64,000 nucleotides of DNA from Octopus bimaculoides (GCF_001194135.2 NC_068982.1:105154014-105218013); one strand, 5' to 3'; positions 14,121 through 60,680 are shown, counted from the first letter of the stretch. Program-made: numbers and translations. The notes: generated from the sequence alone by a model not told the origin.

Positions 14121-14155
<35 letters not shown>

Positions 14156-14159
14156 CATA

Positions 14160-14371
14160 AAGGCAACGAGCTGACAATCATTAGCATGCTGGGCAAAATG
14201 CTTAGCAGTATTTCGCCTGTCACTATGTTCTGAGTTCAAATTCCACCAAGGTTAACTTTGTCTTTCATCTGTTTCAGGTCAACAAATTAAGTACCAGTTG
14301 TGTACTGGGGATCAATGTAATCGACTAGTCCCCTCCCCCAAAATTTCAGGTCTTGTGCCTATAGTAGAAGG

Positions 14372-22079: not shown

Positions 22080-24118
22080 GTATCATTATCACCATCTTTC
22101 AATGTCCATGTTTCATGCTTGACCGGGTTTGGATGATTTGACAGGATTCAAAGAGAATGTTCCATAAGAGTATGAAGGGATATGTTAAGAAATGGGGAAG
22201 ACATGACTGTAGCAAGTCATGGTGAGAGAAACTGGAGTGGCTGGGAGGGAGGTAAGGCAGATATGTGAGGACATGGAGAGTGTTCAGATAGGCACATGCG
22301 AGAGAGAGAGTGGAGGGGACTGCAGTGGGTGAGGCATGTTAGGGAGACCAGAGAGGAAGGGCTTACAGCAGGTGTTGAGAAGATGGGGGAGTTTTGACAG
22401 AGGTCAGATAGTGTGTGTATGTGAGACATGCATGTGTGTGTGGATGGCCATGATTTCACTTAACATCTTGACATGTCATCTCAAGCACAACAAACTTCCA
22501 GAAGTCTTCGTTACTTGTCGTCATCTCTGTGAAGCTGAACATCTGAAAATCATTTCTCACCACTTTATTCCATGTCTTCCTGGTTCTACCTCTACCACAG
22601 GTTCCCTCCACAATTAGAGATCAGCACTTCTTTATGCAGCTGTCTTCATCATTATGCATCACATGACCATACCAGCACAGTATTCTCTCTTGCCTCTTAT
22701 ACCTAAATTTTCTCTTAAACCATTTACACTCTGTCATACCTGCACTCTGACTTTGCACATCCAGTGGAGCATGCTGGATTCATTTCTTTCAAGCCTTCAC
22801 ACGTCCTCTGCAGTTACAGCCCATATTTCACTGCCATGTAGCAAAGCTGTATATACACAGGTATCATACAATCTGACTTTCACTCTGAGGGAGAGGTCCT
22901 TTATAACAAAGGTAGTAGCTCTCTAAACTTTGCCCTGCTTGTTCTTATTCAAGCAACTACAGATTCAGAGTATCCTCCTCCACTACTAACTTGGTTGCCT
23001 AGGTAACAAAGGCTATCTACTACTTCTAAGGATCACCCTGGACATTTGAGGAAGTCTACTTTCTGTACATTATTAGTGTTTATTGTATCTGCACATCTTC
23101 TACACACAAAGACTACTTTCTTTGTTAACTTTCCTATGACACTGTTGCCCCTCTTATGTATCTATAGCTTGCATTAGGTACACCCTATAGAATTTCTACC
23201 TATGCCTTTTCTGCATATCAGACAGGGCTATCTCCCTGAAGGGATTAGTAATTTGTCTGTTTTCCTATTTACTAGGACTTTGGTCTTTACTAAATTAACT
23301 CTAAGGCCCTTTGATTCCACACCTGAGATTTCTTCTTCAGTTCTGGTAGTGATTCAGCTATAAGAACAAGATCATTGGCATAGAGGAGTTCCCAAAGGCA
23401 GCCAATCTTGAATTCCTCTGTTATGGCCTGGAGGACTATGATAAACAAGAGAAGGCTGAGAACTGATCCTTGGCGAACTCCTACCTGTACACTAAATTCG
23501 TTATATTCATTGCTGAGTTTCACCTTACTGATAGCACCCCTGTACATGGCTTGTACAGCTCTCACCAACCACTCATTTATCCCTAGCATTGCCCACCAGA
23601 TAAGAGAGGCTTTCTCCATGTCGACAAAAACCAAGTACAGAGCTTTATTTTTGGTTAAATACTTCTCCTGCAGTTGCCTTACCAGGAAGGTAGCATCAGT
23701 AGTGCTTCTCCTTGGCACAAAACCAAATTGAATTGCATCTAGGCTAACTCTCCTCCTGATTAGTTGAGCTATGACCCTTTCTGTAACTTTCATCACCTGG
23801 TCCAGCAATTTGATACCTCAGTAACTATTTCTGTCTAAGGTATCACCTTTACCTTTGTAGCAGCTGACTAAATGCTGCTGCACCAGTTGTTGGGTATGAC
23901 TCTCTCATAAACAATCTGGTTAACTATACATGAGACGAGATCTGCTAGATATCTTATGCATCTCAGTGGTGATTCCTGATGGGCTGGGGGCTTTCCCTGT
24001 TTTCATATCCTAAATTGCTTTATTTACCAAGCTACTGTTGATTCTGATAGCTGGTTCCTCAGTTGGGTCTACATTAGACAGACTCTCCTTCTCTCATGCA
24101 TTCTATACATTTAGCAGC
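22080..24118 (-). mobile_element. 5'-truncated RTE/RTEX LINE with 3' UTR, decayed
   Basis: LLDQVMKVTERV..QFGFVPRRSTTDATFLVRQLQEKY..VFVDMEKA..GVRQGSVLS..LLYANDLVL (23290-23808). C-terminus GRGRTRKTWNKVVRND near 22560-22590; pyrimidine-rich UTR and GAT-type tail near 22080. Confidence 0.88.
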
Positions 24119-30339: not shown

Positions 30340-30550
30340 TTATCAGGGTCATCAAGGGATGTGTTATAGACTAAGTCTTTATGTCCTGGTGCATAATCCC
30401 ATTCAACTTCTTCAGCTTGAATGAAATATTCTCTGACTTTGTTTTCCTTCATTTCAATATTTTGCTTTCTCCCGCAGCGTTCTACTTTATACATGGCCTT
30501 GGTTCCAGCATTGAAGTGATCATTGGTCACACACTCCACAGCCCATATAC
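30340..30550 (-). CDS. Multicopper ferroxidase exon E11 (domain 4 T1 site, domain 5 start)
   Basis: Acceptor tcttctgtag|GT, donor AA|GTAAGT; 211 nt, phase 1 to 2. GIWAVECVTNDHFNAGTKAMYKVERCGRK...VREYFIQAEEVEWDYAPGHKDLVYNTSLDDPD. Confidence 0.94.
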
Positions 30551-30701
30551 CTACAGAAGAGAGTCGCTGGTTACAATGGATGGGATTCATTTAGAACAAA
30601 CAATTTTCAGCACAAACAGCATGTCTATTATTTTATTGTAATAGAAAACAAAAAGTAGAATTATATACACATGTGTATCAGCAGAGATGATGATAATGAT
30701 G

Positions 30702-30736
<35 letters not shown>

Positions 30737-30740
<4 letters not shown>

Positions 30741-31211
30741 CTGTCCTCATTTAATGACTGAGTTACGTTCCAACAGCCCCGTCGTTAAGCAAATTCATCA
30801 TTAAACGAATATTCATAGGGTACGTATTTTTTTTATAGGTATAGTGTACTGTACGTACATATAAAAACAGAATACCGTACTGTATAAAGTATATGCAGTA
30901 CAGGGCCAAGAACCACTAACATAAATTGTTGAAAAATGAATAAGTAACAGTAAGATTATCATAAAAGATAATGGAAAAAAGAGACGAAATAGTAATATAG
31001 GTACAAAGAGCGTCACTGTGTTGCCTGGCTGACCACAAGCGGGAGAGTGAGAGAGCGAGCGTGTTGGAGGGTGAGACTGGGTGAGTGCACAATACGACAG
31101 TCAAAGTTTTTAAGTTTTTATATTTTGTAAAATATGTAATGACGGCTCGTAAAGTTTGTCGTAACTCCGGGTGGTCGTTAAATAGGTAGGCCGTTAAATG
31201 AGGACAGTCTG
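30737..31211. mobile_element. Tigger/pogo-like MITE (475 bp) in a (TA)n tract
   Basis: TIR CAGACTGTCCTCATTTAATGAC / GCCGTTAAATGAGGACAGTCTG, flanked by TA repeats. Confidence 0.82.
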
Positions 31212-31247
<36 letters not shown>

Positions 31248-31334
31248 TGTATATATNNNNNNNNNNNNNNNNNNNNNNNNNNNNNNNNNNNNNNNNNNNN
31301 NNNNNNNNNNNNNNNNNNNNNNNNNNNNNNNNNT

Positions 31335-31670
31335 TCAATTCCCAGACCAGGCGTTGTGAGTGTTTATTGAGCGAAAACACCTAAAGGTCCACGAGGCTCC
31401 GGCAGGGGATGATGGCGAACCCTGCTGTACTCTTTCACCACAACTTTGTCTCACTCTTACTTCCTGTTTCTGTTGTACCTGTAATTCAAAGGGCCAGCCT
31501 TGTCACACTGTGTCATGCTGAATATCCCCGAGAACTACGTTAAGGGTACACGTGTCTGTGGAGTGCTCAGCCACTTGCACGTTAATTTCACGAGCAGGCT
31601 GTTCCGTTGGTCGGATCAACTGGAACCCTCGACGTCGTAAGCGACAGAGTGCCAACAACACAACAACAAT
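31335..31670 (+). mobile_element. Third copy of the (CAA)n-tailed SINE, 5' end lost in an N gap
   Basis: Reverse complement of 3639-4021 from the B-box region onward, ending ccaacaacacaacaacaa. Confidence 0.85.
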
Positions 31671-33000
31671 ATATGCAAACACATTGCATGTTTGTACATA
31701 TGCAAATATTTTACATGACTATTGTGTACTTTTCATTGAGCTCTTTATTTTCAAGGTACTGAAAATTATGGCTCTTGCTAGTTACAAAGTTAATATGGAT
31801 TACATCATCTGAAGATATCCATTGTCACCGTTGTCATCACCACTGCTGTCGCCAACACCATCGCTGTCATTTAATGTTCAAATTCCATGCTGACATGAGT
31901 TGGAGAGTTTGGCAGTCTTACAAATCAGAGGACTGCCTTATGCACCAATGTCTTCTTTAACATGGTTTCTACAACTGGATGCTCTTTCTAATATCAACCA
32001 CTTTACAGGGTGCATTGGGTACTTTTTTGTGATACCAGCACTAGTGATAATTGTCTTGTAATTTGTAAGACTAAGGCCCTAAAATGGCCCTTATAACTAA
32101 AGGAAAACAGAAGAGAGAGTGGATAATGATACTGGGTGGAGAGATAAGAGAGTGCTAGGTAAGCGGATGGGCTGGGTTGTAAGGCAGGGAGCAGAAGAGA
32201 GGGAAGGAATTAGTGATAGGGTAGAGAAACAGGGAGGGATAGAGATGAAAATGTGATGGGGTAGGTTCTTTTGTTTTTTATGTTTGGAGAATTTCTCTTC
32301 ACAGACTTATTCTATATTACTGAAACCAGTGATCCTTGACTTGATGTTGTTAATGTTTTGCTTAAACTGTGCAGGTTAACATCTTCAGGAAATACATGCA
32401 TAGGGAGGAGATTCCAGAGAACCAATGTTTTGGAGTGGAAGGACTTAGAATAGGAGTTTGTGGTTGGGTCCAGGTGAGAACTAATCACAGCAGAGATGAT
32501 AAAAGGTAGATAAACAAGTGGGTTGAGAGTACTTGGATAGAGGAGTTACAAATCCATCCAGCTCCAAGGAACAGAAGCTGATATAGAATCACTATAGAGG
32601 CTATTATTGTAATTATCAATTATAAAACATTTCTTAGGTTTATTTACCTTGGAAGGATAAAAGAATAGACAAGACATAGTATGGTAATAAATTAAATACT
32701 GTAACCAGAACAACTGCAGCATTGGGAGTGATCTTCATTCAACCTAAATACAATGGAAGCATGCTGAATCAAGCATTCAGACAGCATTTCTACTTGTGGT
32801 CATTCTGTCTTTATTGTAAAGCAAACAAGGTGAGAAAAACAAAATGGAATTGGATATTTGTTAAAAGAGATTTAAGAATGACAGTAACTCTGCTGGTTAT
32901 TGATGCCTCCTAATAAAATCATAGGTCATAAATATAACAACTTAAAGAAATAGAGTTTAAACTCTATCACAGGATGTTTCCAGGAATAACATTTACTTAC

Positions 33001-33213
33001 CAGGATTTACAGCTGTCATTTCTAGTGTTTGTAGCATTCCTGGGAGTACGCTGAAAGTGTCTTTATGGTTTTGATGAACAGTGAAAGTATTTCCATGGAA
33101 ATAAACAGTGTGCAAATCAACTTCGTTGCCAAGAGCCATGATATGCCAGCTGACTTTATCATTCATGCACATTTCTGGTTCATAAAGATTCCCATAAAGG
33201 TAGCCATTGATAC
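33001..33213 (-). CDS. Multicopper ferroxidase exon E10 (domain 4; absent from the ORF track)
   Basis: Translated by hand. Acceptor cttatcttttgtag|GT, donor G|GTAAGT; 213 nt, phase 1 to 1. GINGYLYGNLYEPEMCMNDKVSWHIMALGNEVDLHTVYFHGNTFTVHQNHKDTFSVLPGMLQTLEMTAVNP. Confidence 0.94.
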
Positions 33214-33400
33214 CTACAAAAGATAAGAGGAATTTTTATTTATTATATTTGTAGATCAGTCCATTAAGTGTCTTATAGTGCATAGTTGTGTTCCTCTATA
33301 CTCACAGTTTAAATTATAACAATTTTGCTGTACTGTACATACAGTTCTGGTTACTTTTTCTGATTAGATGTAGTGCACCTGAGCACTGAATACAATGAGT

Positions 33401-33440
<40 letters not shown>

Positions 33441-33461
33441 CATCATCATTATTATTATTTA

Positions 33462-33685
33462 AGGTGACAAACTGGCAGAACTGTTAATACACGGGACATA
33501 ATGCGTAGCAGCATTTCATCCATCTTCATGTTCTGAGTTCAAATCCTGTCGAGGTTGACTTTGCCTTTCATCCTTTCAGGGTTGATAAATTAAGTACCAG
33601 TGGAACATTGGGGTCGATGTAATTGACTAGTCCCCTCAGCCAAAATTTCAGGCCTTGTGCCTTTAGTAGAAAGGATTATTATAAT
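33462..33685 (+). mobile_element. (ATT)n-tailed tRNA-SINE preceded by an (ATT)n tract
   Basis: aaggtgacaaactggcagaa...gagttcaaatcc...tagtagaaaggattatt. Further copies at about 33984-34205 (+), 37688-37940 (-) and 39141-39350 (+). Confidence 0.85.
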
Positions 33686-35930
33686 TACTATCCCTCAAAC
33701 ATTCAGTATACTTCACCTTTATAAATGTTGTTTTGCTTTCAGAAGGAAGAAATCAGTTACCATTTGTTTATAATTAGCATTGTTATACTATTAAATATTG
33801 TGTATGTATGGATGTGTTTGTTCTACATATTTGTTATTTATTTTTCAAGTCTTCCCTATAATGTTGAAATTCTTTTTATTTTTTTCTCTGGTTGAATATG
33901 AAGGAAAAGTTAAATTGTGAGAGGTATCAAAAGCAACAAACAATAACAAATATCAGATCCTAGTCAATATAACAAATCTCAGTAAGGTGGTGAGCTGGCA
34001 GAATCATTAGCACGCCAGGCAAGATTCTTAGCAGCATTTAGTCCGTCTTTAAGTTCTGAGTTCTAATTTCACTGAGGTTGAATATACCTTTCATCCTTTT
34101 GGATTCAATAAAATAAGCACCAGTTGAGCACTGGGGTTGATGTAATCGACTTGCCCTCTCCCTTGAAATAGCTGGCTTTGTGCCAACATTTGAAACCAAT
34201 ATAATAAACCTCAGTTAAACTGCTAATCATTTGTTTAGATGTCATTTCAGACTTTTCTCAGTCTGCTTCCTGGCCACAAAGTTTCCATTATGTCTCATTG
34301 GAGCGACAGTGTGGTTATTTAACTCTAGATCAGATCTGATCCAACAGACTTATGACCAAAAATATTCCTGTTATGACAATCCTGTCTTCCATTCAGACAA
34401 GGAGAGTTCTGGTGGCTCAATAGTCGATCAAAGGAATATCTTGGCAGTCGCTCGACCTGCTAGAAATAGCAACCAACGACACCTTACTGTCACGAAATAA
34501 AGAAGATAAATTGGACATGGTTTTTATTTGTTTATTTTTATGCAGCAGCTGGAATGGAATATAAGATGAAAACCTCAGTTCACCGTGTTTCAAAAGCATT
34601 GGCTAGTGTATATAAAGGGAAACAACTCTGTTGCTATGATCAAGTAATAAGTATTAACGATATATATATACAAGGTATTGGGATTTGATGGTGAAAGGTA
34701 CCTGTAATAGTAATAAACCTTGAAAGATTTGGATAGAGAAGTTAGGACATGTATTGAAATATTAGGCTAATTTTTTTAGGATGACATGAGATCAGCTTGT
34801 AAAGAGAGATACTTTACTGTCAGCATGTGAAAAACATCATCGTTCTAACTTCCACTTCTCCATGATTGCAAGGATCGCACGAAATTTGTTGAGGAAGATT
34901 TTCTACGGCCACATGCCCTTCCTGTCGCTAACCCTCACTTATTTCCAAGCAAGTTATGGCCAGACATGTTTTTTGCTGAATATTGGAAATGAACGACACT
35001 ATTTGTATAACAGTGAAATTCATTTACAATTATTATGTAAGGACAAGGAGACACACACGCGTGCATGCCCCCCACCACGCACGACAGGGTTCTTTCAATT
35101 TTTATCCATCAAATCCACTCACAAGATTTCGGTCAGCCTAGAGCCATGGTAGAAGACACTTTACCAAGGTGTTACACAGTGGGACTGAACCCCGAACCAT
35201 ACTGTTGGGAAGCAAACTTCTTAACCACACAGCCATGTTTGCACCTCAAAACATATTAAAATGTCAGTGTTGGTAGTTGTTTTTCTTTCTTTTTATCATT
35301 CTTCAAGAATTCTCTCTCATTTCTCATTATGATCCCACCAAGTTGCTTCATCAAACACATTCTTACTTTAAGAACTAACACCTGTATTTCACCTCATCTT
35401 TATCATTCACCTGGTATTTATTTAATCACCCATGGGAAGATAAAGAACCTGAAGATCCGAATATGTCATTAACTTACCTTAATCTTTTCACTGTGGAAAA
35501 CAGATATATTTAAATAATAATTTAATTTCTCTTCACTGCAGAAAGCAGTTTTATGTACCAATCCATCTCTTTTGGGGGAATGTCATGCTTGAAACTATTT
35601 ATTGTTGAGATATGCCAAGTTTATTGAGACAACATGACTTGCAGAAAATACCAATTCTATTTTTGGTAGATATTTACCATCATTACAGGAATAACCCATG
35701 AAATGGGTCAAAACAATTGTAGTGATTAATAGATATTCTCATATCTTCCATCTTCTGTGTCTCTTCGGCAAAAGAGACTGATAGAATAAGTACAAGGCCT
35801 AAAAAAAATAAGTACTGGGGTCAACTCATTTGACTAAACCTTTCAAGGTGGTGCCCTAGCATGGCTGCAGTCTAATGACTGAAACAAGGAAAAGATAAAA
35901 AAATAAAATGTAATCCACTTGAGTACCTAC

Positions 35931-36081
35931 CATGCATCAAATTTGATTCCATAAAATCTTCATCCTCTACATCAACAGAATCAGGATTTATAGCATACTT
36001 TTCAATGTTCTTTTTCAAGTACCAAGAATTGTTTTCGTCAGTCACCGTAAACATGAGAAAGAACTCTTTATCTACGTTTTT
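35931..36081 (-). CDS. Multicopper ferroxidase exon E9 (domain 4 N-part)
   Basis: Acceptor cccttttcag|AAA, donor G|GTAGGT; 151 nt, phase 0 to 1. KNVDKEFFLMFTVTDENNSWYLKKNIEKYAINPDSVDVEDEDFMESNLMH. Confidence 0.94.
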
Positions 36082-37686
36082 CTGAAAAGGGAGAAAATAA
36101 ATGAAAAGATGATAAAATAACAAAATCAAAATTACGTCCAGTGTTATCTTTTATCTTTTACTTGTTTCAGTTATAAGACTGTGACCATGCTGGGGCACCG
36201 TCTTGAAGAACTTTTGGTCGAATGAAATGAACCCAGTATTTTCTTTTCTAAGCCTAATATTTATTCTATTAATCTCGTTTGACAAACTGCTAAGTTATGG
36301 GGATGTAAACAAACCAACACCAGTTGTGAAGTGGTGTGGGAAACAAAGACACACACACACACACACACACACATATGAGGAGCTTCTTTCAGTTTCTGTC
36401 TATCAAAACCACTTATAAGGCTTTGGTTAGCCCAAGGCTATAGTAGAAAATACTTACCCAAGGTGCCACACAGTGGGACTGAACCCAGACCTATGTGGTT
36501 GGAAGGCAAGATTCTTACAACACAGCCATGTGAATAAAGGTTTCTGTGTTTCTGTAAGGCAAATAAAGGCATTTCATCTGTCTTTATGTTTTGAATTCAA
36601 ATTCCACCATGGTTAACCCCTTTCAGGGTTGATGTAATAAGAACCAGTCAAGTAAAGGGGTTGATGTAATCAATTAGCCCCCTCCCTCCAAATTTCAGGC
36701 CATGTGCCTAAAGTAGAAAGGATTATTATTATTATTAATGTGGCAAGCAAGCAAAATCATTAGTACACCAGACAAAATGAATAATCTGGTACAGAGAGAT
36801 AACAAGATGGTGAGAGTAGGATACTATGCTAAGAGAAGTAAAACTGAGTGAAGAGGAATGAACAGGCAGAAGGAAGTGATACTTGAGAAGTTAGCAATTA
36901 GTGATGGGGAAACCAAAAGCTAATAATGAAAGACAACAACAGAATTGAACAATGAAGAAAAAATGATGGGAAAAGCAGAAAAATGACAAAATGAAAAAAT
37001 GAAAAAATTTAAAGATGACAAGAAGCTGAGATAGTGTGAAAGGTTTTAATAGATTACATGAACAGTGAGGAGGCCCTTGGAAATCCTCATTTGAAAATCC
37101 CAGCTAATTTTTTTTTGTGTGTGTCTACCATTATGTTTTGAGTTCAAATACCACCAAAGTCAACTTTACCTTTCACTCTTTTGGGGTTGGTGAAAGAAGT
37201 ACCAGTTGAGCACTGGAGCCAATGCAGTCAACTTCTGTCTCCCCTCAGAATTGTTGGCTTAGTTCCAAAATTAGAAATTATTATTATTATTATTAGAGGT
37301 GCTATCTCCTACAAAGAGAACAGAGAACAGGATTGCAGGGGCATGAAGAGAACACAAAGTACGCAAGTCCAGAGCCAACTCCTTTCTTTCAGTCCCAACA
37401 GAGCCTTCCAAACATGGATCAGACTGATTGGCTACAACTGGATACACTGTATCCTGTCTTTTTTTCTGTGTGATGTCCTTGTGAACATCAACAATGACAG
37501 GCTAACTAATAATAATAATAATAATCATCATCATTATTGTTTAACGTCTGCTTTCCATGCTGGCATGGGTTGGACAGTTTGACTGAGGACTGGCAAGCCA
37601 GGAGGCTGAACCAGGGTCCAATCTGATCTGCCCTTCCTAACACCAACCACTCTGAAAGTGCAGTGGGTGCTTTTTATGTGTCACCG

Positions 37687-37727
<41 letters not shown>

Positions 37728-38406
37728 CCTTTATACTATAGGCACAAGGCTTTAAATTTGTGGGGAGGGGTTAAGTCAATTACATCGACTCCAGTACTCA
37801 GCTGGTACTTAATTTATCAACCCCGAAAGATGAAAGGCAGAGTCGACCTCGGCAGAACTTGAACTCAGAACATAGCAACGGGAAAAATACTGCTAAGCAT
37901 TTCACCTAGCATGCTAATGATTCTACCAGCTCACCACCTTAATAATGATAATAATAATAATGATAATGATGATTTCATTTAATTGCCACCAGGGCAAAGG
38001 ATGAGGGGGACAATGCAAAACAGATACAAAATGTGAGGGTTTGCATATAATGAAATGATAAAATAAATAAATAAATAAATAAAATAATAAAAAAAAGGTG
38101 TAAGTATACACTGTATACTATGAAAAGGAAGAGAAGTATACATAGTATACAAAGGTTAACAAAAAAAGTGGAGGGTGATAGATGGTTCTAATACCCTTTT
38201 AAAATTAAAAAAAAATTTTTAATTTAAATTTTATTTTTATACAACATAATATTACATGGGCTTTTGCTACACTTTGATTATAAACGTTTTCCCTCTGAGT
38301 CCTTAATGTTTTCCTAGATCCCAGTATAGTGTCCTAAGTTTCATAGCGTACTGAAAATAACGACAAGAGTTAATGTCACCCTACTCTACCTCTTTTATGG
38401 GCATTT

Positions 38407-38796
38407 GTTGTTGTTGTTGGCACTCCGTCGCTTATGATGTTGAAGGTTCCAGTTGATCCGATCAACAGAACAGCCTGCTCGTAAAATTAACGTGCAAGTG
38501 GCTGAGCACTCCACAGACACGTGTACCCTTAACGTAGTTCTCAGGGATATTCAGCGTGACACAGTGTGACAAGGCTGGCCCTTTGAATTACAGGTACAAC
38601 AGAACCAGGAAGAAAGAGTGAGAGAAAGTTGTGGTGAAAGAGTACAGCAGGTTTCGCCACCATCCCCTGCCGGAGTTTCGTGGAGCTATAGGTGTTTTCA
38701 CTCAATAAACACTCACAACGTCCGGTCTGGGAATCGAAATCGCAATCCTATGACCGCGAGTCTGCTGCCCTAACCACTGGGCCATTGCATCTCCAC
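38407..38796 (-). mobile_element. Second full-length copy of the (CAA)n-tailed SINE
   Basis: Collinear with 3639-4021; 11-bp TSD tatgggcattt (38396-38406) / tatggacattt (38797-38807). Confidence 0.9.
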
Positions 38797-41171
38797 TATG
38801 GACATTTACTGCTATCTAATTGACTCTTTCTAGAGTTTATTTCTTTTTGTGGCAAGGGGTACTCATGACAGTAAGGAATTAAAGTTTGTTTCTTTTTGTG
38901 GTGAGGGGTATTCATGGCATTAAGAAATTAAGAAATAGTAAGAAATAAAGGAATAGGAGAAACATCTAGCAATATTTATTTATGATCAGCAGCCAGCTCT
39001 GAGCTGTCAACTCACAATGTTCTTTATTCTATGTAGCATTCTAGCCTTAGATCTTTTGTTGAAGAACCCCACTGTCCAAGATCTCCCTGAACACCAAGGG
39101 CAAGTGCCCTCACCAATTCCCTAATAATAATTATTATTATTAAGGTGGCCAGGTGGCAGAAACATTAGCATTCTGGAGAAAATGCTTCATGGTATTTCTT
39201 CCAGTTTCACATTGTGAGTTCAAATTCTGTTGAGGTCGACTTTCCTTTTGGAATTAATAAAATAAATACCAATTAAGCACTTGGTTGATGTCATTAACTA
39301 GACTCATTACCCTAAAATTCAGGCCTTGTGCCTATAGTAGAAAGGAGCATTGTTGTTGCTACCTCCACTGCCACTGCTGTCACCCTCACCACCACCACCA
39401 CCATAATCATCAGTAATGGAGGAGTATAGAATACCAGTACCATATGCTGTGCAGAGTTAGACTTATCTTATGGTCCTAGTTTAAATTTTGCCATGGTCAA
39501 GTTTACTGGTCAGCTTTACCTTTACTTTTAATTAGATATGATATCTCCCTCAAGAAATTCATCATCATCATTATTTTGATGTCTACTTTTCCATGCATGC
39601 ATGGGCCAGAAGAGAGTACATTGGAGCAAAATTTTCTATGGCTGGATGCCCTTCATGATACCAGCCTGCACTTGTTTCCAAAGTCCTACTGTATTGAATC
39701 ACAAACATCCCAAACTTGGCCACATGAAGAACTGGGAACAAGCAACATTGTTTAAATCAGCCTTTTGTTTACTACTGTGGTATGATGTCAGCAACTGGGG
39801 AGCTGACCTCTGACCGGAACCGTGAACTGACCGGAATGGCGAGCTGACCAGAAGAGGAAGAAGGGCCGAGGGAGCCTCGATTGGGATTTCGTGCCCTTTT
39901 CGAACGGGGTTGTTGTGAGGAGAGGACGTGCCAAGCAATCGTCTAGGTGTTGGGAGAAGCAGCTGCTATTTCTAGTGTTCTTCGGGTCGGGGCGAGCCGC
40001 GAGGATCGGATACCGCAGGACAGACTCGTGCAAAGGAAGGAAAAACCGAGGTAAGCCAATTACTTATTCTCGCACGCATACACCACAACTACAAAGTGTG
40101 TACAATATGTCGAGACATATTAAGAAGATTGGATGTGCTTTTGCACTGTGAGGGTGACCCCCTTCGGTTATGAATGACCATGGGATAGTACCTAGAAAGT
40201 TACCCTCTGAGGCACAAGTCTGGGCAAGGTTATTTATGGAAGACCAGTAGTTGCTCATGCATACCAGCCTCCCTTCTGCACACCACCGATGTTATCCAAG
40301 GGAAAGACAAAGGCCAATACAGCTTGGTACCAGTGACGTTGCAACTCATTTCTACAGCTGAGTGAACTGGAGCAACGTGAAATAAAGTGTCTTGCTCAAA
40401 AACACAACACGCAGACTGGTCCAGGAATCAAACTCACAATCTCACAATCATAAGCTCAACACTCTAACCACTGAGCCATGCACCTTCAGTCTTTTGCACT
40501 AGACGGCAAGCAAATGACATCATTGTTGTTGTCGTCGTTGTCCATCTCTCCATCATTGTCATTGTCGCTGACCTCCTCCTCGACATCATCATCATTATCA
40601 TCATCATCATCATTTAGCATCTGTTTTCCATGCCGGCATGGGTTAGGCAGTTTGACTGGAACTGGTAAGCCAGAGAGCTGTGCCAGGCTTCAGTCTGATT
40701 TGGTCTGGTTTCTATGGTTGGATGCTCTCCCTAATACCAACCACAGAGGCTTGCTGTTACTATTTACAACCAGTAAACACTCATGAAGATGAAAGGAAAT
40801 ACAAACACATATGCACACACACATACACGCACACACAGGCATGCGTGCGCATGTACAGACACGCGTGCGCATGCACAGACATGCGTGCACGCATACAGTG
40901 GGCTTCTTTTAGTTTCCATCTACAAAATCCACTCACAAGGCTTTGATCAGTATGGAGCTCTAGGAGGAAACACTTGCCCAATGTGCTATGCTGAACCCAA
41001 AACCTTGTGGTTGGTAAGTAAACTGTTTATCATAGTTTTGCTTATAAATTCTAGTAAAATAAAGGTCTTTAAAATGAAAACAAGAATGTCCAGTGGAAAT
41101 GAAACCAAAACCACATGCTTGGGAAATGAACTTCTTAACCACGCAGCCATGCATACACTTTCAGAAGTATA

Positions 41172-41387
41172 TGAGGGGGTGCTGACAAGTTCCTGGCTTT
41201 AAGGGTATCATGAAAGGCCTGGCTGGAGGCCCAACCTTCTAAGTTCTTTTACAGGGCTTAGAAAAACTGAAGGGCCACTGCAATAAGTGTGTGAATCTGA
41301 GAGAGGAATACGTTGAATAAAATCATAATTAACTGATTCTCCTATATTTTCTTTTACCCAAAGCCAGAAACTTTTCAGCACCTCTTG
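41172..41387 (+). mobile_element. mariner-derived MITE (about 216 bp)
   Basis: TA flanks; TIR TGAGGGGGTGCTGACAAGTTCCTGGCTTT / AAAGCCAGAAACTTTTCAGCACCTCTTG. Internal GLEKLKGHCNKCVNLRxEYVE* resembles a mariner transposase C-terminus. Confidence 0.75.
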
Positions 41388-41530
41388 TATTATTGTTTCA
41401 CTTCACAAACAAACATAAAATTTATTTTTTAAGCCATTATATAATGGGAAGAAGATCGACAATTTTATCATGGCTGACACAAACCAACATACTACCAAAG
41501 AAAATTTCTTTCTCATTAAAAAAGAAACAT

Positions 41531-41940
41531 GGAGTGGCTGTGTGGTAAGTAGCTTGCTTACCAACCACATGGTCCCGGGTTCAGTCCCACTGCGTGGCAT
41601 CTTGGGCAAGTGTCTTCTACTATAGCCTCGGGCCGACCAAAGCCTTGTGAGTGGATTTGGTAGACGGAAACTGAAAGAAGCCCGTCGTATATATGTATAT
41701 GTATATATATATGTATGTGTGTTTGTGTGTCTGTGTTTGTCCCTCCAACATCGCTTGACAACCGATGCTGGTGTGTTTATGTCCCCGTAACTTAGCGGTT
41801 CGGCAAAAGAGACCGATAGAATAAATACTAGGCTTCCAAAGAATAAGTCCTGGGGTCGATTTGCTTGATTAAAGGTGGTGCTCCAGCATGGCCGCAGTGA
41901 AATGGCTGAAACAAGTAAAAGAAGAAAAAAAAGAAAAAAA
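41531..41940 (+). mobile_element. Bipartite tRNA-SINE copy
   Basis: ggagtggctgtgtggtaagtagcttgc...gaagcccgtcg(TA/TG)n...ggtggtgctccagcatggccgcag...gaaacaagtaaaagaag; ends about 14 nt from the E8 donor, inside the intron. Confidence 0.88.
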
Positions 41941-41953
41941 TGACAGTTCTCAC

Positions 41954-42147
41954 CTGTTTTCTTTGGCTATTAAGACTACCTTTTTTGCATATAAGCAATG
42001 GCCCAACAAGGCCAGAGTATGTGTCTTTCATGGTGTTTACTTCTGATGCATACATCTTAGTTAAGCAGTCAGGATCTTTTTCAAGTGGTTCCATTTCTTT
42101 TGTTACATACCAGTAGTAAGTTTTCTGGCTATGTGGTTCAACAATAC
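41954..42147 (-). CDS. Multicopper ferroxidase exon E8 (domain 3 C-half)
   Basis: Acceptor ttctattgtag|GT, donor CAG|GTGAGA; 194 nt, phase 1 to 0. GIVEPHSQKTYYWYVTKEMEPLEKDPDCLTKMYASEVNTMKDTYSGLVGPLLICKKGSLNSQRKQ. Confidence 0.93.
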
Positions 42148-44819
42148 CTACAATAGAATAATGTTTTTAAGAAAGAAATATTTTAATGCTTAAACTTCTG
42201 CTTAGCAAATTAGATCAAATGAGAGTCAAGACTATTGAAAAGGTTGCAAAACGCAACGAAAATTTTAGGAAAATAAAAATAATAAGTGAAAATTTTAAAG
42301 GTGAGTGTGTTAAATTTTAAGGCACGATAAGAAAATGACTCTCCCCAGACACAACAGAATATGCTTCAACACACGGAATCACATAAAAAATCTTGCAAAC
42401 CAAATCCAAAAACAAAATTAGATCAAATTTAATTGATTAATGTTCACATTAGTTATTCTACTGTATATGGTTATTCACCCACAATTTTTTTTTTTTTGTT
42501 ACATTTACAACAAATTTTTTATTAATTTTTAGAAGAAAGCAAAATTCCCTAAAACTCCATGCCAACCATCCGTCATGTATGATTTCCTGCTGGAGATTAA
42601 TTCCAGATTCCAGTCTATCACAAGTAACATTCCCAGAAGATCTGAAGGTAGGTGAACTGACACTACAAAAAAATTAAGTTTCCTGTCCAGAGAAACACAT
42701 AGTAGTGACGGCTTGTATGAACTACCACCTAATAGATAAAAGCTGCTGAAGAGATTTAGTATCATTTGTTGACGAACTCAATGGAGAAACATACAACATC
42801 CTTAATAAAATTTTTACATGCTTTAAGTTTAGGATAATATGCCTAATAGTGGACATTTTAACTCTAAAATAAATTGAAAATTATCCTATTATAAAGATTT
42901 GGAAATTGAGATAACCAGAATGTGAGGATTGAAAAGAGACACTAGCACTACTAAATTTTATATAGTTTATAGATTATTTTCAATACTGTTAAAAAAATAA
43001 AGAAAACTAAAATTCTATATATACCTAAGGTAAACAGACAGAGCTGTGTTGGGCTGTGCAATGAAAATACATAATAAAAATAATACTATTAAGTTCTTAC
43101 ATAGGTGCAAGACCTCAAATGTAAGAGGTGTGTTGCTAGGGCATAATTGGTATTTTTTATTGATCCCTAAAGAATGAAAGGCAAAGATAATTTCAGCAGG
43201 ATTGAACTTGGAGCACCAAGGAATGTAACTAAATATCACAAGAGATTTTGCTGATTCTGCTAATCAAATGTCTTTACAATAATATGTTCACTCAAATTCC
43301 TCTAACAATAACAACTTTCTTCATCCTTTGGCTTAGTGGTTAGGGTGTTGTACTTATGGTTGTAAAATCATGGTTTCAATTCCCAGTCCAGTGGTGTGTT
43401 GCATTCTTGAGCAAAACACTTCATTTCACATTGCTCTAGTTCACTCAGCTGTAAGTGGGTAACTTTGCAATGGGTTAATATACAAGGGTGAGATAGTGAC
43501 TCTGGAAAATCCCTGAATGGAGGTTTCAAGAGACACATTTTGTGTTCAGGGTTTGAAAGAATGGATAATACAACTTGTACTGTGAATCCCAACTGGTCGG
43601 GATTGGTTGTTCAACCCCATTGAAGGTCAGTCAATCAAAGATCAGTTTCTTTACTGCATGATTAACCTATCCACTTACCAGTATTCAAAAACCTACCTGT
43701 GGAGTATATCCTGAGATGATACACTCAAGAACTTTCCAATTCTCAGTTTTACTATTATCAACCTTTCCCTTACTCCAGTGAAACTCACCACTCTATTTAT
43801 AAACTATATACAAACCAAGATACCAGCATCATAAACTCCTTCTAGACATTTTTCCACACAATCTTTTACTTCTGCACTTATCTTTCCCTCACCACTTCCT
43901 TCCTATCTTGTTTCTGACATACTACATATGTCCACTCTCCTTCTGATCAATGCCTCCACAACTTCCTTGGTCTCCGTCATCATCCTTGTATTCTATACTG
44001 CAAGCCTTTTATATTCTAATCTCTGCAGGAGACACTTCTTTTAAAATAAGAACACACTAATTAATGTAGCCCTAGATGCACTCTGTCAAGAAAAATAAAT
44101 GGATTATTTGACTTACAAATAACTGATCACTCATATTATACTGTGTAGTGAGGCTGCTGAAAAGTTTTGAATCATCTCACTTAGGTCCCTGCTTTAGAAC
44201 CACAATCCAACTATATTGCCATAAAAGGCAAAGGCCAGCTACAAGAAATTAACTGTATTGCCTTAAATGGCATTAATGTTTATGTGAACATGATTTGACC
44301 AATCAGATTAGCTGGTGTATAACGAAATAAGTAGTAGACTTGAAAGTGAGTTTTGTGAATTTTCTCACCAAATAGTTCTGCTGAAGGTTCTAGAAGCTTG
44401 AGTGAATGTTATAAAATGTTGGGATATTGAACTGCTGAACAAGACAGCCTCAGGTGCTATACAGAACTCTGTTGGTCAGTCCTGTGTCAAGGTGTTCTCA
44501 CTTTTTCTACTTCTTATTCTGTCTTTAATAATCATCAATGATTTTCTTATAAACAACTAAATTATTTTATGCAATGAAGACCTTTAGCTATCACAGTAAC
44601 TATCTCTTGTATGATGTTTTATTCAAATAGTTGTTATATATATGTAAATGCATATGTTTTGAGTAATAAAAAATATGGAAACTTAGAAAAATATTAGTAT
44701 GGTCATTTTTGCCTTCACACACAACCTTGTATAATATTTTGTACAACAATGAATCTATTAAGATCTATTAGAATGATGACCCAATAAAACGTTCTTGTTT
44801 TCAGGAGAGTGTGATACAT

Positions 44820-45349
44820 TACTCTTTTACTTGTTTCAGTCTTTTGACTGCGGCCATGCTGGAGCACCGCCTTCAGTTGAGCAAATCGACCCCAGGACTT
44901 ATTCTTTGGAAGTCTAGTACTTATTCTATTGGTCTCTTTTCCCGAACAAACGTAAACACACCACCATCAGTTGTCAANNNNNNNNNNNNNNNNNNNNNNN
45001 NNNNNNNNNNNNNNNNNNNNNNNNNNNNNNNNNNNNNNNNNNNNNNNNNNNNNNNNNNNNNNNNNNNNNNNNNNNNNNNNNNNNNNNNNNNNNNNNNNNN
45101 NNNNNNNNNNNNNNNNNNNNNNNNNNNNNNNNNNNNNNNNNNNNNNNNNNNNNNNNNNNNNNNNNNNNNNNATATACACATATATACGACAAGCTTCTTT
45201 CAGTTTCCGTCTACCAAATCCACTCACAAGGCTTTGGTCGGCCTGAGGCTATAGTAGAAGACACTTGCCCAAGGTGCTACGCAGTGGGACTGAACCCGGA
45301 ACCATGTGGTTGGTAAGCAAGCTACTTACCACACAGCCACTCCTGCGCC
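44820..45349 (-). mobile_element. Bipartite tRNA-SINE copy (internal microsatellite in an N gap)
   Basis: Both halves flank the N run at 44978-45170; head ends ...actcctgcgcc. Confidence 0.87.
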
Positions 45350-45628
45350 TATTAGATAAAATATTCATAGATATTCAATGTACCTGAGTGATTATGGCTG
45401 GAATGCTTTTTGGTCATGGGTCTGGTCAATAATTGCTGACCTGGGGCTAAACAACAATAGCAGTTGGATGGTTACAACTGGAATGCCTTTGATCACAGAT
45501 TTGCCCAATCATGGCTGGCCTTCAGCTTAACAACAACAACAACTAAAACAATGCAGTAATGCCATCATTTATACAAAAATTATTTCTGAAATTATTAAAA
45601 AAACAAAACAAATTCAGTGTCACTTTAC

Positions 45629-45915
45629 CCTTATCACCAGCTTGGTCAGTATAGAAAGCTCCTTCATCAAATTTGTTATAGTATACACCATAGGGATGAA
45701 TGGAAAACTTATATGATGCTTTATTATAGAAAACAACTTTTATTATTTCTCCAACTTCAGCTCGAATCACAGGCCCTAAGGAACCCAAGTGTTTTTCATC
45801 TATTCCTCTTTGCTTCTGTTTTGTAAAACTTTTGTCAGTGTATTCATGATAGATAGCTTTCATGTATTTTCCACCAATTCTTTGTGCACCATTTTTAAAA
45901 AATACTTCTGAATCA
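45629..45915 (-). CDS. Multicopper ferroxidase exon E7 (domain 3)
   Basis: Acceptor tttttcccccaccag|T, donor G|GTAAAG; 287 nt, phase 2 to 1. (S)[30 protein letters not shown]...HLGSLGPVIRAEVGE...SIHPYGVYYNKFDEGAFYTDQAGDK. The donor was chosen by phase and alignment; alternative GTs lie within about 10 nt. Confidence 0.88.
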
Positions 45916-47357
45916 CTGGTGGGGGAAAAAAACAGAAAAGCAAAGCAAACAATACATTATGTTTTAAAAAAATTAATTACTGAATTTCAAACTGATTTTT
46001 TGGACAGTTTTATTAAATGCTCTCCACCTCTCTCCAATTTAGTTTTGATAGAGATATTTTAAAGTTATAAACAGGATGCACTGTCAAACTATATAAGAAG
46101 TTAGTCAGATGTGTTGAATAAGCATTGTATGCCCCTCCCCCACTGCCCCCACTGCATTTTAAAAAAATTCTTCAGATTCCTTTACTTCCAACAGTGGAAA
46201 TTACGATTTTGTACATCCTCCAAAAAACAGCTTTTCAATATTTGATTTTCTCTTCTTTTTTTTGTTTTTGTTTGTTTGTTTGTTGAATGCCACTTTAAAA
46301 ATATGAAGCTCAAGATTCTGAAAAAAAAAAATCTTTGTCAAAATTACAACTTTTAAAAAATTCTTTTTCCCCCTTCCTGACTTTTTGAATACTCAACAGA
46401 AATACAGAGAGCAAACAAACTTAATAATGGTTTGAGAATTATATTTAACCTATTCATAAATTGGATTACAAGTAGTAAGAATGATTAACATTTTTGGGAA
46501 TTCCTTTAACTTTTAAATATATTTTGGCTGTAAGGTACTCTTCATGCTGGTTTGATACATAATGTTTTTGAGCAGCAATTTTCTTATTGATCAAATCCTT
46601 TCCCTCCAGACAAAATCCATGGAACATGAAGTGATGATAGTCAGTTCCCTCATACTGAGTCCATTCTCCAAGAATAAAAGATCTTTATTTATATATCATG
46701 AACTAACTTAATTTTTCCTCCAAATGGATTTTAAAAGTCAAATTTTCATTGAAACAATATTAGAAAAGTTGTACATATTGATAACAAGATGAAAAAAGGT
46801 GGCAAAACAAGACCAGAAGTTAGGTAAAGTAATGTATTGCAAAAAAAAAAAAAATCAAATAATGCAAACCTATGGATTCCTGCAAAAAAATACATAAATA
46901 AATAATTAAAAAAGGTGAGAAAAGATCCAATGATGCTTTGACTTGACGTAAGGAGATGAAGTTTTAGCGCGGACAAATCACTAAAAAATGAATGGTACTA
47001 AAACTCCAGAAGATCTGATGAAGTTTTGACTCAACAAATTTCTACATGTTCAATTTTAATTTATGCAAATAAAAACTATTGATGTTATTTCATATTTTTT
47101 TTTATATTGGTTTTTCAACATTAGAAACTTACTTTTGGTTGAAGGGCCAATAGTCTTCTGCAAGAGTTAGACTAAAAGTTTGCTCACAAAGCAACATTTT
47201 AGTTAGCAATCAATAGTGATAAATTGATTTAAAAAACAATTTTCTGAGAGAACTTGATCTTAACTCTACAAATTACCAAACTACTCACTAAATTCAAGAA
47301 AACAATTTAAAATGTTTGAAATATGAAACCCCAACATACATGATTTTGTGTTAAACA

Positions 47358-47789
47358 GGCACGGGAGTGGCTGTGTGGTAAGTAGCTTGCTTACCAACCA
47401 CATGGTTCCGGGTTCAGTCCCACTGTGTGGCACCTTGGGCAAGTGTCTTCTACTTTCGCCTCAGGCCGGCCAAAGCCTTGTGAGTGGATTTGGTAGACGG
47501 AAACTGAAAGAAGCCCGTCGTATATATGTATATATATATATATGTNNNNNNNNNNGTGTGTGTGTGTGTGTGTGTGTGTTTGTGTGCCTGTGTTTGTCCC
47601 CCTAGCATTGCTTGACAACCGATGCTGGTGTGTTTACGTCCCCGTAATCTAGCGGTTCGGCAAAAGAGACCGATAGAATAAGTACTAGGCTTCCAAAGAA
47701 TAAGTCCTGGGGTCGATTTGCTTGACTAAAGGCGGTGCTCCAGCATGGCCGCAGTCAAATGACTGAAACAAGTAAAAGAGTAAAGAGTA
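47358..47789 (+). mobile_element. Bipartite tRNA-SINE copy (full length)
   Basis: ggcacgggagtggctgtgtgg head through tail gaaacaagtaaaagagtaaagagta. Confidence 0.9.
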
Positions 47790-48678
47790 AACAATCCACT
47801 TATCTCAGTTCAATTTCTGGTTGTCTTCAGTGCCTCTGTTCTTATATAGATAGATTTGTCAAAACCTTCATGTAAAAGGCAAGGTTTCAAAGTTCTTAAC
47901 CACTGAGCCACCATCCTGCACAGTGAGAGCTAGCCAGTTTTTGAGGTTTATAAAATCACATTAATGATAGCAGCCATATTGTGCATCAATGTTAAATTTA
48001 CTGATTTGGTTTTCAGTTAATGCTATACTAACAGCATCTTTTCATCTTATGAATTTTTAATGTGGTTCTTTGCATATGATGGAAACTTCTACTTAAATTC
48101 AAATTAATTTGAAACTCCAAAATCAAGTTAATTGAATTTTTCCTTTACAGTTAAGTGGAACTACTATTTTTAGCACTTTACCCAAGAATTTATTTTTTCT
48201 CTCTTTATTATATATTATGTAACTGAATATTTGGGACAGTTGATGTTTAATCTTTTGTCCAAAGTCTACTGATTCTTGTCTGTCTGCATATCCATTAGCT
48301 AAGTAAATAGGGATAAGGAATGTTTAATGTCAAGTCCGAAGACTTATTTCTCACTTTCTATTCTCTGCTGCTAGGTATGTGTGGCAAAGAGATTTTAAAT
48401 GTTTACTGCATTTCAGTGCAGTATAGCACCAGTTATGAAATTATGAATTCCCAGAGTCATTAGTCTTATTCATTTAATCACAGCACTTTTGCATATGGGT
48501 TCTTTTTTTTTTTCTTTGGTATTAATGATCCTGGAGATAGTGAAATAGTGTCCAATGCATTTCCAGGCCCTCCTTGACTAAACACAAACAAAAACAAACA
48601 AAAACAAACAAACAAAACAAAACAAAAAAAGAAATAGAAGCAAAACTTCAAAAATAATTTTGATAATAAAGTACTGAC

Positions 48679-48844
48679 CTGTCAGGTTCTGTGAGAGATC
48701 CACCATCATAGAGGTTCGTGCCATTTCTTGAGTAACTCCATTCTTCTTCTTCAGCCGCAATAAAATATTCTACAATCTTAGAATCGGTGCTAATGTTATT
48801 GGTCTTCTTACAGAACAATACTTCCATCATGGTTTCCATGCCAC
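48679..48844 (-). CDS. Multicopper ferroxidase exon E6 (domain 2 end, domain 3 start)
   Basis: Acceptor ttttag|GT, donor AG|GTCAGT; 166 nt, phase 1 to 2. GGMETMMEVLFCKKTNNISTDSKIVEYFIAAEEEEWSYSRNGTNLYDGGSLTEPD; supplies the axial Met of the domain-2 T1 site. Confidence 0.92.
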
Positions 48845-59319: not shown

Positions 59320-60680
59320 ACATTGCACATCTAGCAGAGCATGCTCACTTCATTTCTTTCCAGCCTTCTCAAGTCCTCTGCATTTAAGGTCCATGTCTCA
59401 CTACCATGCAGCATTACAATTGTAACATAAGCATCATACTATCTACTCTTTGGGAAAAAATCTTTGTTGTTAGGAGTGGTAATAGCTTCCTGAGGTTTCT
59501 CCAACAAGTCGTCACTCTAGCCATTATACTTTCAGAGCAACCACCTCTCTTGCTAATTACATTTCCTGGGTAACAAAAGCTATCAACTACCAGAGAGCCA
59601 TCTGGGCATTTGAGAAAAGCTATTTTCAGTGTGCACATAGTATGAACTGCTCCAGTACTACATATGAAGCTTACATTTTTGGATAATCTATCATCATCAT
59701 CATCATCATCATCGTTTAACGTCCGCTTTCCATGCTAGCATGGGTTGGACGATTTGACTGAGGACTGGTGAAACCGGATGGCAACACCAGGCTCCAGTCT
59801 GATTTGGCAGAGTTTCTACAGCTGGATGCCCTTCCTAACGCCAACCACTCAGAGAGTGTAGTGGGTGCTTTTACGTGTCACCCGCACGAAAACGGCCACG
59901 CTCGAAATGGTGTCTTTTATGTGCCACCCGCACAAGCCAGTCCAGGGGCACTGGCAACGATCTCGCTCGAAAATCCTACAGGAGCCAGTCAGGCGGTACT
60001 GGCAACGGCCACGCTCAAAATGGTGCATCTCATGTGCCACCCGCACAAGAACCAGTCCAGGGGCACTGGCAACGATCTTACTTGGCTTGCCGGGTCTTCT
60101 CACGCACAGCCCATTTCCAAAGGTCTCGGTCCGTAGTCATCGCCTCGGTGAGGCCCAATGTACGAAGGTCTTGCCTCACCACCTCAGCCCAGGTCTTCCT
60201 GGGCCTACCTCTTCCTGCTAATGATTTTACTACATGTCTTGTGTGTCCATAGCTTACATTGGGTACAGCATGTGGAATTTATATGTACTCCTTTTATGTA
60301 TATCAAACAAGGTCTTTTACTCAAAGCTACTAAGATCCTGTCTTCTTTCCTACTTACTGAAACCTTTGTCTTTACTAAGTCTACCTTGAGGCCTCTCATT
60401 TCTAGCTTTAGCTTCCATGCCTGCAATTTCCTCTCTATAGATTCAATAATGAGAACTAGATCATCAGCATGTAAGAGTTCCCATGGACATCCAGTTTTAA
60501 ACTCCCCAGTGATGGCTGTAGGACTATCATGAACAGAAGAAGATTGAGGACTGAAACTTGTTGAACTCCAAGGATATCCAATCTTAAACTTCTCTGTGAT
60601 AGTTTATAGGACTCTGATAGGTGCTACTTTAGCTTGTGGTTTACCATAGTATCCATAGTCTACTACATAGTCTGTGAAAT
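59320..60680 (-). mobile_element. Second old RTEX-like LINE fragment, split by a younger insertion
   Basis: FKTGCPWELLHADDL..QAWKLKLEMRGLKVDLVKTKV..CTQCKLWTHKTCSKIIS | RLSKNVSFICSTG..FCYPG; the frame rejoins across 59691-60215. Confidence 0.82.
59691..60215 (-). mobile_element. Young, CpG-intact 5'-truncated RTE LINE 3' end
   Basis: GRGRPRKTWAEVVRQDLRTLGLTEAMTTDRDLWKWAVREKTRQAK*, then a UTR with an internal repeat of about 70 bp, AGGAAGGGCATCCAGCTGTAGAAAC and a (GAT)n tail. Confidence 0.9.

Follow-up and report, generated by a model that had tools for sequence, protein, structure and literature searches.

Does an octopus ferroxidase carry threonine at the position where a canonical type-1 copper site has its axial methionine and, if so, what could this mean for the protein? 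The question is raised by a 64,000-nucleotide stretch of the Octopus bimaculoides genome (GCF_001194135.2, NC_068982.1:105154014-105218013; the whole stretch is called the window here, and positions are counted from its first letter), which contains an annotated hephaestin-like protein gene on the minus strand. Judged by its sequence, the gene in the window codes for most of a secreted six-domain multicopper ferroxidase of the ceruloplasmin/hephaestin family, with the catalytic parts intact. A first-pass annotation of the same DNA had described its type-1 copper sites as swapped relative to human ceruloplasmin (CP), with methionine in domain 2 and threonine in domain 4. The threonine of domain 4 (Thr691) is real. 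We consider it likely that this is an intact ferroxidase in which the domain 4 site, lacking methionine, is probably three-coordinate and has a higher potential. The gene was already annotated; as far as we could find, the threonine at the axial position and its conservation in molluscs had not been described.

Copper sites of the encoded protein

Exons 2–13 of the gene are present in the window (12 exons, minus strand, 62864-10017). They were found from minus-strand stop-to-stop frames and by tblastn with a human CP sequence as a rough guide, and their boundaries were read from the flanks of the matches. The guide sequence was used only to locate exons; its numbering agreed with 32 of 32 residues given in the literature, and the key alignment was redone on the PDB sequence. 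Joined together, the 12 exons give a single open frame of 996 codons that ends at TAA 10019-10017, with AG acceptors and GT donors throughout. In a database search the gene model was 100% identical to residues 51–1046 of the NCBI protein XP_014771914.1 (P0001, 1046 aa), which is located on a 192-Mb scaffold.

The type-1 loop of domain 2 has the form C-HVHD-H-YVGG-M and reads KCHVHDHYVG/GMETMMEV (the slash marks an exon boundary), with C330 at 49306-49304, H335 at 49291-49289 and M340 encoded by ATG at 48839-48837, all on the minus strand. The loop of domain 6, C-HVDD-H-IIGG-M, reads HCHVDDHIIGGM (also written as HCHVDDHIIGGMNTIYTV), and its M1036 is at 10052-10050 (minus strand). Domain 4 has C-VTND-H-FNAG-T, with the sequence VECVTNDHFNAGTKAMYKV, entirely within the exon at 30550-30340 (minus strand). 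Its type-1 ligands C681 and H686 are encoded at 30533-30531 and 30518-30516, and the axial position is occupied by Thr691, codon ACC at 30503-30501, which corresponds to Met690 of human CP. Three residues further, at 30494-30492, follows the ATG codon of Met694. Direct translation confirmed both the loop readings and the ACC codon of the first-pass annotation. The canonical C-x4-H-x4-M (His2CysMet) pattern is therefore incomplete in domain 4, where Thr691 stands in place of Met.

The other ligands are all present. The upstream (distal) type-1 His, in D-[IL]-H, is kept in all three domains (H287, H638 and H980). The catalytic type-1 site of domain 6 is complete (H980, C1026, H1031 and M1036) and is wired to the trinuclear cluster through HCH. 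All eight His residues of this cluster, which reduces O2 and lies between domains 1 and 6, were found (H120/H122, H180/H182, H983/H985 and H1025/H1027), aligning in the same order with the human pairs H101/103, H161/163, H978/980 and H1020/1022. For the Fe(II) sites, with residue roles taken from PMC3738974 and PMC11817551 and the octopus residues assigned by alignment only, the sets are E634/E248/H253/D334 for domain 2, E976/E598/H603/D685 for domain 4 and E283/E940/H945/D1030 for domain 6. The Fe(II) sites described for human CP are E272/E935/H940/D1025 and E597/H602/D684/E971 (PMC3738974, PMC11817551).

The domain 2 loop showed two further features. It is split by a phase-1 GT-AG intron (between 49282 and 48844, minus strand) that lies between Gly338 and Gly339, two codons ahead of the axial Met, unlike the loops of domains 4 and 6, which are each contained in a single exon. 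In cephalopods it also has a His straight after the Cys (C-H-V-H-D-H, 49306-49289, minus strand), like the HCH of domain 6, where most other animals have CQVNDH. The domains next to domain 2 lack the other ligands that a second trinuclear cluster would need.

Register of Thr691 and predicted structure

An ungapped phmmer alignment to 1KCW_A (mature human numbering) placed H638, C681, H686 and T691 on H637, C680, H685 and M690 of human CP. The claim that domain 4 is a type-1 site without a Met ligand was thus upheld. Pfam Cu-oxidase_2 and Cu-oxidase_3 were both found above cut-off, and phmmer matched CP chains at E=0. The AlphaFold2 model, for which 60 aligned sequences were used, had a mean predicted local distance difference test score (pLDDT) of 92.8 and a predicted template modelling (TM) score of 0.91; compared by Foldseek with the human CP structures 2J5W and 4ENZ, it gave TM scores of 0.93–0.95, a root-mean-square deviation of ~2.1 Å and 44% identity. 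The predicted pattern is alike in domains 2, 4 and 6: a strand that ends at the Cys, a short helix with the second His, one residue, and the last beta-strand. The single residue just before this last strand is M340, T691 and M1036, respectively, so that modelling, which the first-pass annotation had proposed as a check, puts T691 at the same predicted position as the two axial Met residues.

Since a Met is present three residues past the canonical position (GTKAM), Met694 might serve as the axial ligand through a local register shift. We give this very little credence and rejected Met694 as a ligand on register and on conservation. The alignment to human CP is free of indels and puts Met694 on Lys693, and in the model Met694 is the third residue within the last predicted strand; the same +3 place is taken by Met343 in domain 2 and Ile1039 in domain 6, beside a real axial Met. 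In relatives that keep the Thr, the residue in this column is Leu (the decapodiforms, that is Sepia and the transcripts P0004 and P0333) or Ile (Haliotis), which argues that Met694 is not a ligand. The first-pass annotation had likewise judged this Met to be out of register.

Conservation of the threonine

Alignment of orthologues from cephalopods and other molluscs, also proposed in the first-pass annotation, showed that the Thr recurs across cephalopods and Haliotis. It was found in the domain 4 axial column of O. bimaculoides, O. sinensis, O. vulgaris (two models) and Argonauta hians, in a cluster that contains Sepia (Acanthosepion) pharaonis and its many transcript contigs of ~3.5 kb, in two cephalopod-like transcripts (P0004, SRR27666085, and P0333, SRR24189490), and in Haliotis cracherodii, H. 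rufescens (two copies) and H. asinina. In total, at least 10 independent genomes or transcriptomes contain it, with three synonymous codons: ACC in Octopus and Haliotis, ACT in Argonauta and ACA in three decapodiform-like transcripts. This turnover indicates that the amino acid was kept while the codon changed. Four full-length, intronless Logan contigs (L001–L004) provide the Thr at transcript level for cephalopods other than O. bimaculoides itself.

Thr691 is a genuine amino-acid state and not an error, and the change to Thr predates at minimum the split of octopods and decapodiforms. We attach next to no weight to an assembly or annotation artefact, be it a sequencing error, an exon misjoined over a gap or a pseudogene. 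It could be suspected because three runs of N lie within the span that contains the loops of domains 2 and 4 (31257-31333, 44978-45171 and 47546-47555; the window has eight runs in total). However, these runs are situated in introns 9, 6 and 5 of the gene model, respectively, all 12 exons have GT-AG borders and share one open frame, and the protein is identical in the NCBI annotation. Moreover, the Thr is also present in the O. sinensis, O. vulgaris and Argonauta genomes and in cephalopod transcripts, and ACC would need two substitutions to become ATG. Where exons meet over the gapped introns, the protein can be aligned with those of Argonauta, the Sepia cluster, Haliotis and gastropod relatives, and with a further cephalopod transcript. 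The sole length difference is one of 4–5 residues in a variable loop at junction 6/7, which is common to Octopus and the independently assembled Argonauta. A hidden exon or a frame break inside one of the gaps was rejected, since the gaps are intronic, the frame is open and the junctions align with those of relatives.

Among 192 aligned homologues the axial column of domain 4 contains Met in 178, Thr in 6, Leu in 3, and Glu, Ser and Ala in one each, with 2 gaps. In domain 2 the numbers are 180 Met, 4 Ala, 4 Leu, 2 Ser, 1 Glu and 1 Thr, the last in a copy that has lost the Cys; in domain 6 they are 190 Met, 1 Ile and 1 gap, the latter two from rows with a truncation or misalignment at this place. 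When 1.84 billion representatives were searched exhaustively with a profile, 150 proteins were obtained, 145 of them new. In these 145 new family representatives, 189 C-x4-H-x3-G-X motifs were present, with axial Met in 180, Glu in 4, Leu in 2, and Ala, Thr and Gln in one each; the lone Thr is that of the cephalopod-like fragment P0333. With 1 of 189 motifs and 6 of 192 rows of the domain 4 column, Thr is indeed as unusual an axial residue as had been claimed.

The statements on human CP in the first-pass annotation (Leu329 in domain 2, Met in domains 4 and 6, and a largely redox-silent domain 2 copper) agree with the PDB sequence and with PMC3738974 and PMC11817551. In the 1KCW alignment human domain 2 reads CQNLNHLKAGL and human domain 6 reads HCHVTDHIHAGM. 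The copper of human domain 2, with its axial Leu, is not oxidised without damage to the protein (PMC3738974, PMC11817551). The description of the sites as swapped, which implies a single reciprocal change, was not supported in that form, as the domain 2 Met is common to 180 of the 192 homologues and Leu was found only in four mammalian CPs. Met is present in domain 2 of all HEPH and HEPHL1 proteins, of bird, reptile, amphibian, coelacanth and fish CP, and of cnidarian and amphioxus proteins; for hephaestin it is also stated in the literature (PMC3738974, PMC11817551). Met at this position is the majority state in the aligned sequences and probably ancestral. Because Met is in the majority and Leu is limited to mammalian CP, the human domain 2 Leu and the mollusc domain 4 Thr are independent, lineage-specific changes.

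In the literature we found neither a natural type-1 site described with an axial Thr nor any mention that such a Thr is conserved in molluscs. For the copper sites of mollusc hephaestin-like proteins, the literature yielded only a chiton radula proteome that lists a hephaestin-like ferroxidase and a table of an octopus ink proteome. The peptide table of the latter (Octopus vulgaris, PMC10142993) contains NMSHSLWTSFFLCMLGIVSQVK under 'hephaestin-like protein', which matches the N-terminus of the protein encoded here. This hints that the O. vulgaris orthologue was identified in that ink proteome.

Phylogeny and fate of the domain 4 site in molluscs

A neighbour-joining tree, distance-based only, was made of 41 sequences (1047 columns, 100 bootstraps). 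Mollusc clade A (96% bootstrap support) consists of the cephalopod genes (100%) and gastropod genes (100%), and mollusc clade B (93%) of a freshwater/unionid mussel (Potamilus), Lottia, Gigantopelta and a second octopus paralogue. Vertebrate CP, HEPH and HEPHL1 together form a clade with 100% support, and all mollusc sequences fall outside it. The octopus gene does not group with vertebrate CP apart from HEPH and HEPHL1, and it is therefore not an orthologue of CP specifically; the tree, in which deeper nodes are poorly supported, suggests that it is equally related to all three. A phylogeny of six-domain copper proteins from 2013 covered no molluscs and noted the domain 4 site as the least conserved (PMC3600357).

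Within clade A, the axial column of domain 4 has Thr in all cephalopods and in Haliotis copy A, which is the slowest-evolving abalone copy. The fast-evolving Haliotis copies B to E have Leu, Glu, Met and Met, and clade B has Met. Every Thr-bearing protein has the His/Cys/His of domain 4 and all four Fe-site residues intact, and has fully canonical domains 2 and 6, like the cnidarian homologues. Haliotis copies B to E and echinoderms, by comparison, keep the His/Cys/His of domain 4 and have lost Fe-site residues. As ligands and Fe-site residues are intact, unlike in such decaying lineages, the pattern of conservation argues that the domain 4 site is maintained by selection in cephalopods and abalone copy A, with Thr as its normal state.

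The same comparison gave three observations on mollusc copies. In gastropods the type-1 sites of domain 4 (and of domain 2) are found in every stage of decay, from axial Thr, Ser or Ala through to loss of the Cys and His. Haliotis has at least five tandem-looking paralogues on one scaffold (copies P0122–P0130). The second six-domain octopus paralogue was present in O. sinensis (P0297), O. vulgaris (P0437) and, as a fragment, O. bimaculoides (P0438).

Several findings weigh against an intact domain 4 site in which the Thr has raised the potential. The domain 4 type-1 site is the most labile of the family generally. In caenogastropods the axial column has Ser (Pomacea, P0132) or Ala (P0169); Babylonia (P0253) has Ala and has lost both Cys and His, and Nucella (P0255) has Met and has lost the Cys. 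Ser and Ala in caenogastropods and the loss of Cys in neogastropods indicate that the column tolerates several small residues and that the site is dispensable. Parsimony on the tree does not distinguish one early Met-to-Thr change from two parallel ones, which take seven steps each. With regard to the chemistry, the smaller residue leaves room for a water molecule, which could bind the copper and shift the potential the opposite way, and the literature yielded no biochemical data (copper, spectra or potentials) for cephalopod members.

The first of these findings lead to the alternative of neutral drift at a dispensable domain 4 site, whose copper would add little to catalysis in molluscs and where loss of the Met was tolerated and of no functional importance, possibly as the first step of a decay of the gastropod type. 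It fits with the variety of residues among clade A gastropod copies (Thr, Ser, Ala, Leu, Glu or Met), with the Cys lost in Babylonia and Nucella, and with fish CP that lacks the domain 4 Cys. Drift would, however, have to account for a Thr that is invariant in every cephalopod sequence found, from both superorders, and in all four Haliotis copy A proteins despite codon turnover, and for the intact His/Cys/His and four Fe-site residues of the Thr-bearers, unlike those of decaying lineages. We therefore regard it as possible, though rather unlikely.

The point on water relates to an alternative with a four-coordinate site. Here the Oγ of Thr, or a water held by the Thr, would bind axially and give a perturbed 'green' or type-1.5 site, with a potential that is unchanged or lower. 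In its favour, the polar Thr differs from the Leu or Phe of the usual Met-less sites, and small axial residues leave a cavity that is open to solvent. On the other hand, the side chain of Thr is three to four bonds shorter than that of Met at an equal backbone position, and no natural precedent was found in the literature. Axial coordination of this kind seems quite improbable to us.

Possible behaviour of the domain 4 copper

We return to the Met-less, three-coordinate site. The Thr side chain has no thioether ligand to offer and would be too short to reach the copper, which is most likely held by His638, Cys681 and His686 alone. By analogy with Met-less sites and axial mutants, the potential of domain 4 would lie above those of the Met sites of domains 2 and 6. 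Replacement of Met by a non-coordinating residue raises the potential of a type-1 site (PMC3738974), the axial Ala and Phe mutants of a Thermus laccase have higher potentials (PMC6487685), and the reverse change in a laccase, L499M, lowers the potential by 140 mV (PMC4220974).

Given that all of its neighbouring Fe(II)-site residues are conserved, the domain 4 site probably still accepts electrons from the substrate. It would keep a tighter hold on electrons taken from Fe(II) before their passage to the domain 6 copper and the trinuclear cluster. By this analogy a raised potential is a plausible inference, and so is the rewired electron-entry route that the first-pass annotation had proposed along with an altered potential. 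A literature search for engineered Met-to-Thr type-1 mutants gave irrelevant matches only. An engineered Met150Thr type-1 site in the nitrite reductase of Alcaligenes faecalis is reportedly non-coordinating, with a potential ~0.1 V higher and a larger reorganisation energy.

A more far-reaching view is that the axial Thr represents a selected, undescribed class of type-1 site that has existed since before the split of cephalopods and abalones, with paralogues that share the electron-entry duties and a site tuned for a specific role. We put this forward as doubtful. If true, the present gene (domain 2 Met, domain 4 Thr) would complement the second paralogue (domain 2 Ala, domain 4 Met), and the domain 4 Thr would be tuned in potential or reorganisation energy, for instance for electron storage or for a substrate other than Fe(II).

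Among blue-copper sites, no tuning point of the potential is better known than the axial residue. To our knowledge, what is known of axial residues besides Met, Leu, Phe and Gln comes almost entirely from engineered mutants. A natural Thr that selection has kept in an otherwise fully canonical three-site ferroxidase offers a built-in comparison of two Met sites with one Thr site. It also shows that the arrangement of ceruloplasmin, with one odd type-1 site, arose more than once and in different domains, and that the site roles of human CP should not be copied when mollusc ferroxidases are modelled. The finding should be of moderate interest to blue-copper specialists and of low general surprise, and its practical consequences are limited until the protein has been expressed and measured.

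Organisation of the gene in the window

All exons are on the minus strand and are given here in the direction of the gene. The first exon in the window (62864-62620) belongs to domain 1 and encodes the trinuclear ligands H120 and H122 (HPH); the second (56681-56469), also domain 1, encodes H180 and H182 (HSH). Coding exon 1 (residues 1–50, a hydrophobic, signal-like N-terminus) was absent from 62865-64000 by ORF (open reading frame) listing and tblastn, with which only internal repeats were matched. The exon at 53528-53231 spans domains 1 and 2 and contains the domain 2 Fe-site residues E248 and H253, E283 (for the domain 6 Fe site) and the type-1 H287. It is followed by the two exons that share the domain 2 loop: 49388-49282, with C330, D334 and H335, stops within the loop (...HYVG/), and 48844-48679 opens with /GM..., which includes the axial Met340, and comprises the end of domain 2 and the start of domain 3. 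Two exons of domain 3 (45915-45629 and 42147-41954) precede one of domains 3 and 4 (36081-35931) that encodes the domain 4 Fe-site residues E598 and H603. E634 and the type-1 H638 (CAC, 33112-33110) are encoded by the domain 4 exon at 33213-33001. The exon at 30550-30340 contains the entire domain 4 type-1 loop (C681, D685, H686, T691 and M694) and the start of domain 5. A single, large exon (19100-18499) contains most of domain 5 and the start of domain 6, with the domain 6 Fe-site residues E940 and H945, and the last exon (10321-10017) encodes E976, H980, H983, H985, H1025-C1026-H1027, D1030, H1031 and M1036 of domain 6. The TAA follows ...YTVENMP, seven residues past the last strand, and the NCBI model stops at the same place. 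The membrane anchor of hephaestin and HEPHL1 was not found, since the frame has no transmembrane tail and does not continue through a downstream donor site.

Domain 5 is thus encoded mostly by one exon of 602 bp (19100-18499), and the homologous stretch of domain 1, like that of domain 3, is interrupted by two further introns at matching positions (...GNEG/A... and ...CKK/D... in one, ...GDKG/I... and ...RKQ/K... in the other). This reflects either intron loss in one repeat or intron gain in the others. Intron 10 (30339-19101) contains a reverse-transcriptase ORF at 23293-23817 (minus strand; Pfam RVT_1, E 6e-12). Other ORFs that look like retroelements or transposases, none above the Pfam cut-off, lie on the minus strand at 12468-13169, 13459-14251, 14894-15731, 60208-60603 and 61313-61687. 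The long introns are apparently full of decayed mobile elements and microsatellites.

Comparison with known copper proteins

Like human CP (1KCW, 2J5W and 4ENZ), the octopus protein has six cupredoxin domains, which form three repeats of two domains each, is soluble and lacks a transmembrane tail. The trinuclear ligands, the three type-1 sites and the Fe(II)-site residues of domains 4 and 6 align between the two, and in both one of the three type-1 sites is without an axial Met. They differ in which site this is: domain 2 (Leu) in human CP and domain 4 (Thr) in octopus. In addition, octopus domain 2 has Met and a full Fe set (E248, H253, D334 and E634), whereas the human domain lacks this set and has Y241 and N323. 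Since all four Fe(II)-site residues are kept, octopus domain 4 does not mirror the silent domain 2 of human CP.

Hephaestin and HEPHL1 (zyklopen) are the highest-scoring vertebrate matches, with 45–48% identity, and NCBI names the octopus protein 'hephaestin-like'. They share the classical axial Met in domain 2, but have Met at all three axial positions and a C-terminal membrane anchor that is absent from the octopus protein. The second octopus paralogue has the same six-domain architecture and an intact domain 6 site. Its pattern is the reverse of that described here, with an axial Ala and loss of the Fe-site residues in domain 2, and Met in domain 4.

Raised reduction potentials are described for the type-1 sites without Met in Fet3p, in fungal laccases and in CP domain 2 (PMC3738974, PMC4220974). 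As in these sites, the His2Cys set is kept in octopus domain 4 (H638, C681 and H686) and the axial residue is without a thioether. The known sites have Leu or Phe, which are bulky and hydrophobic, whereas the Thr of the putative three-coordinate octopus site is small and polar.

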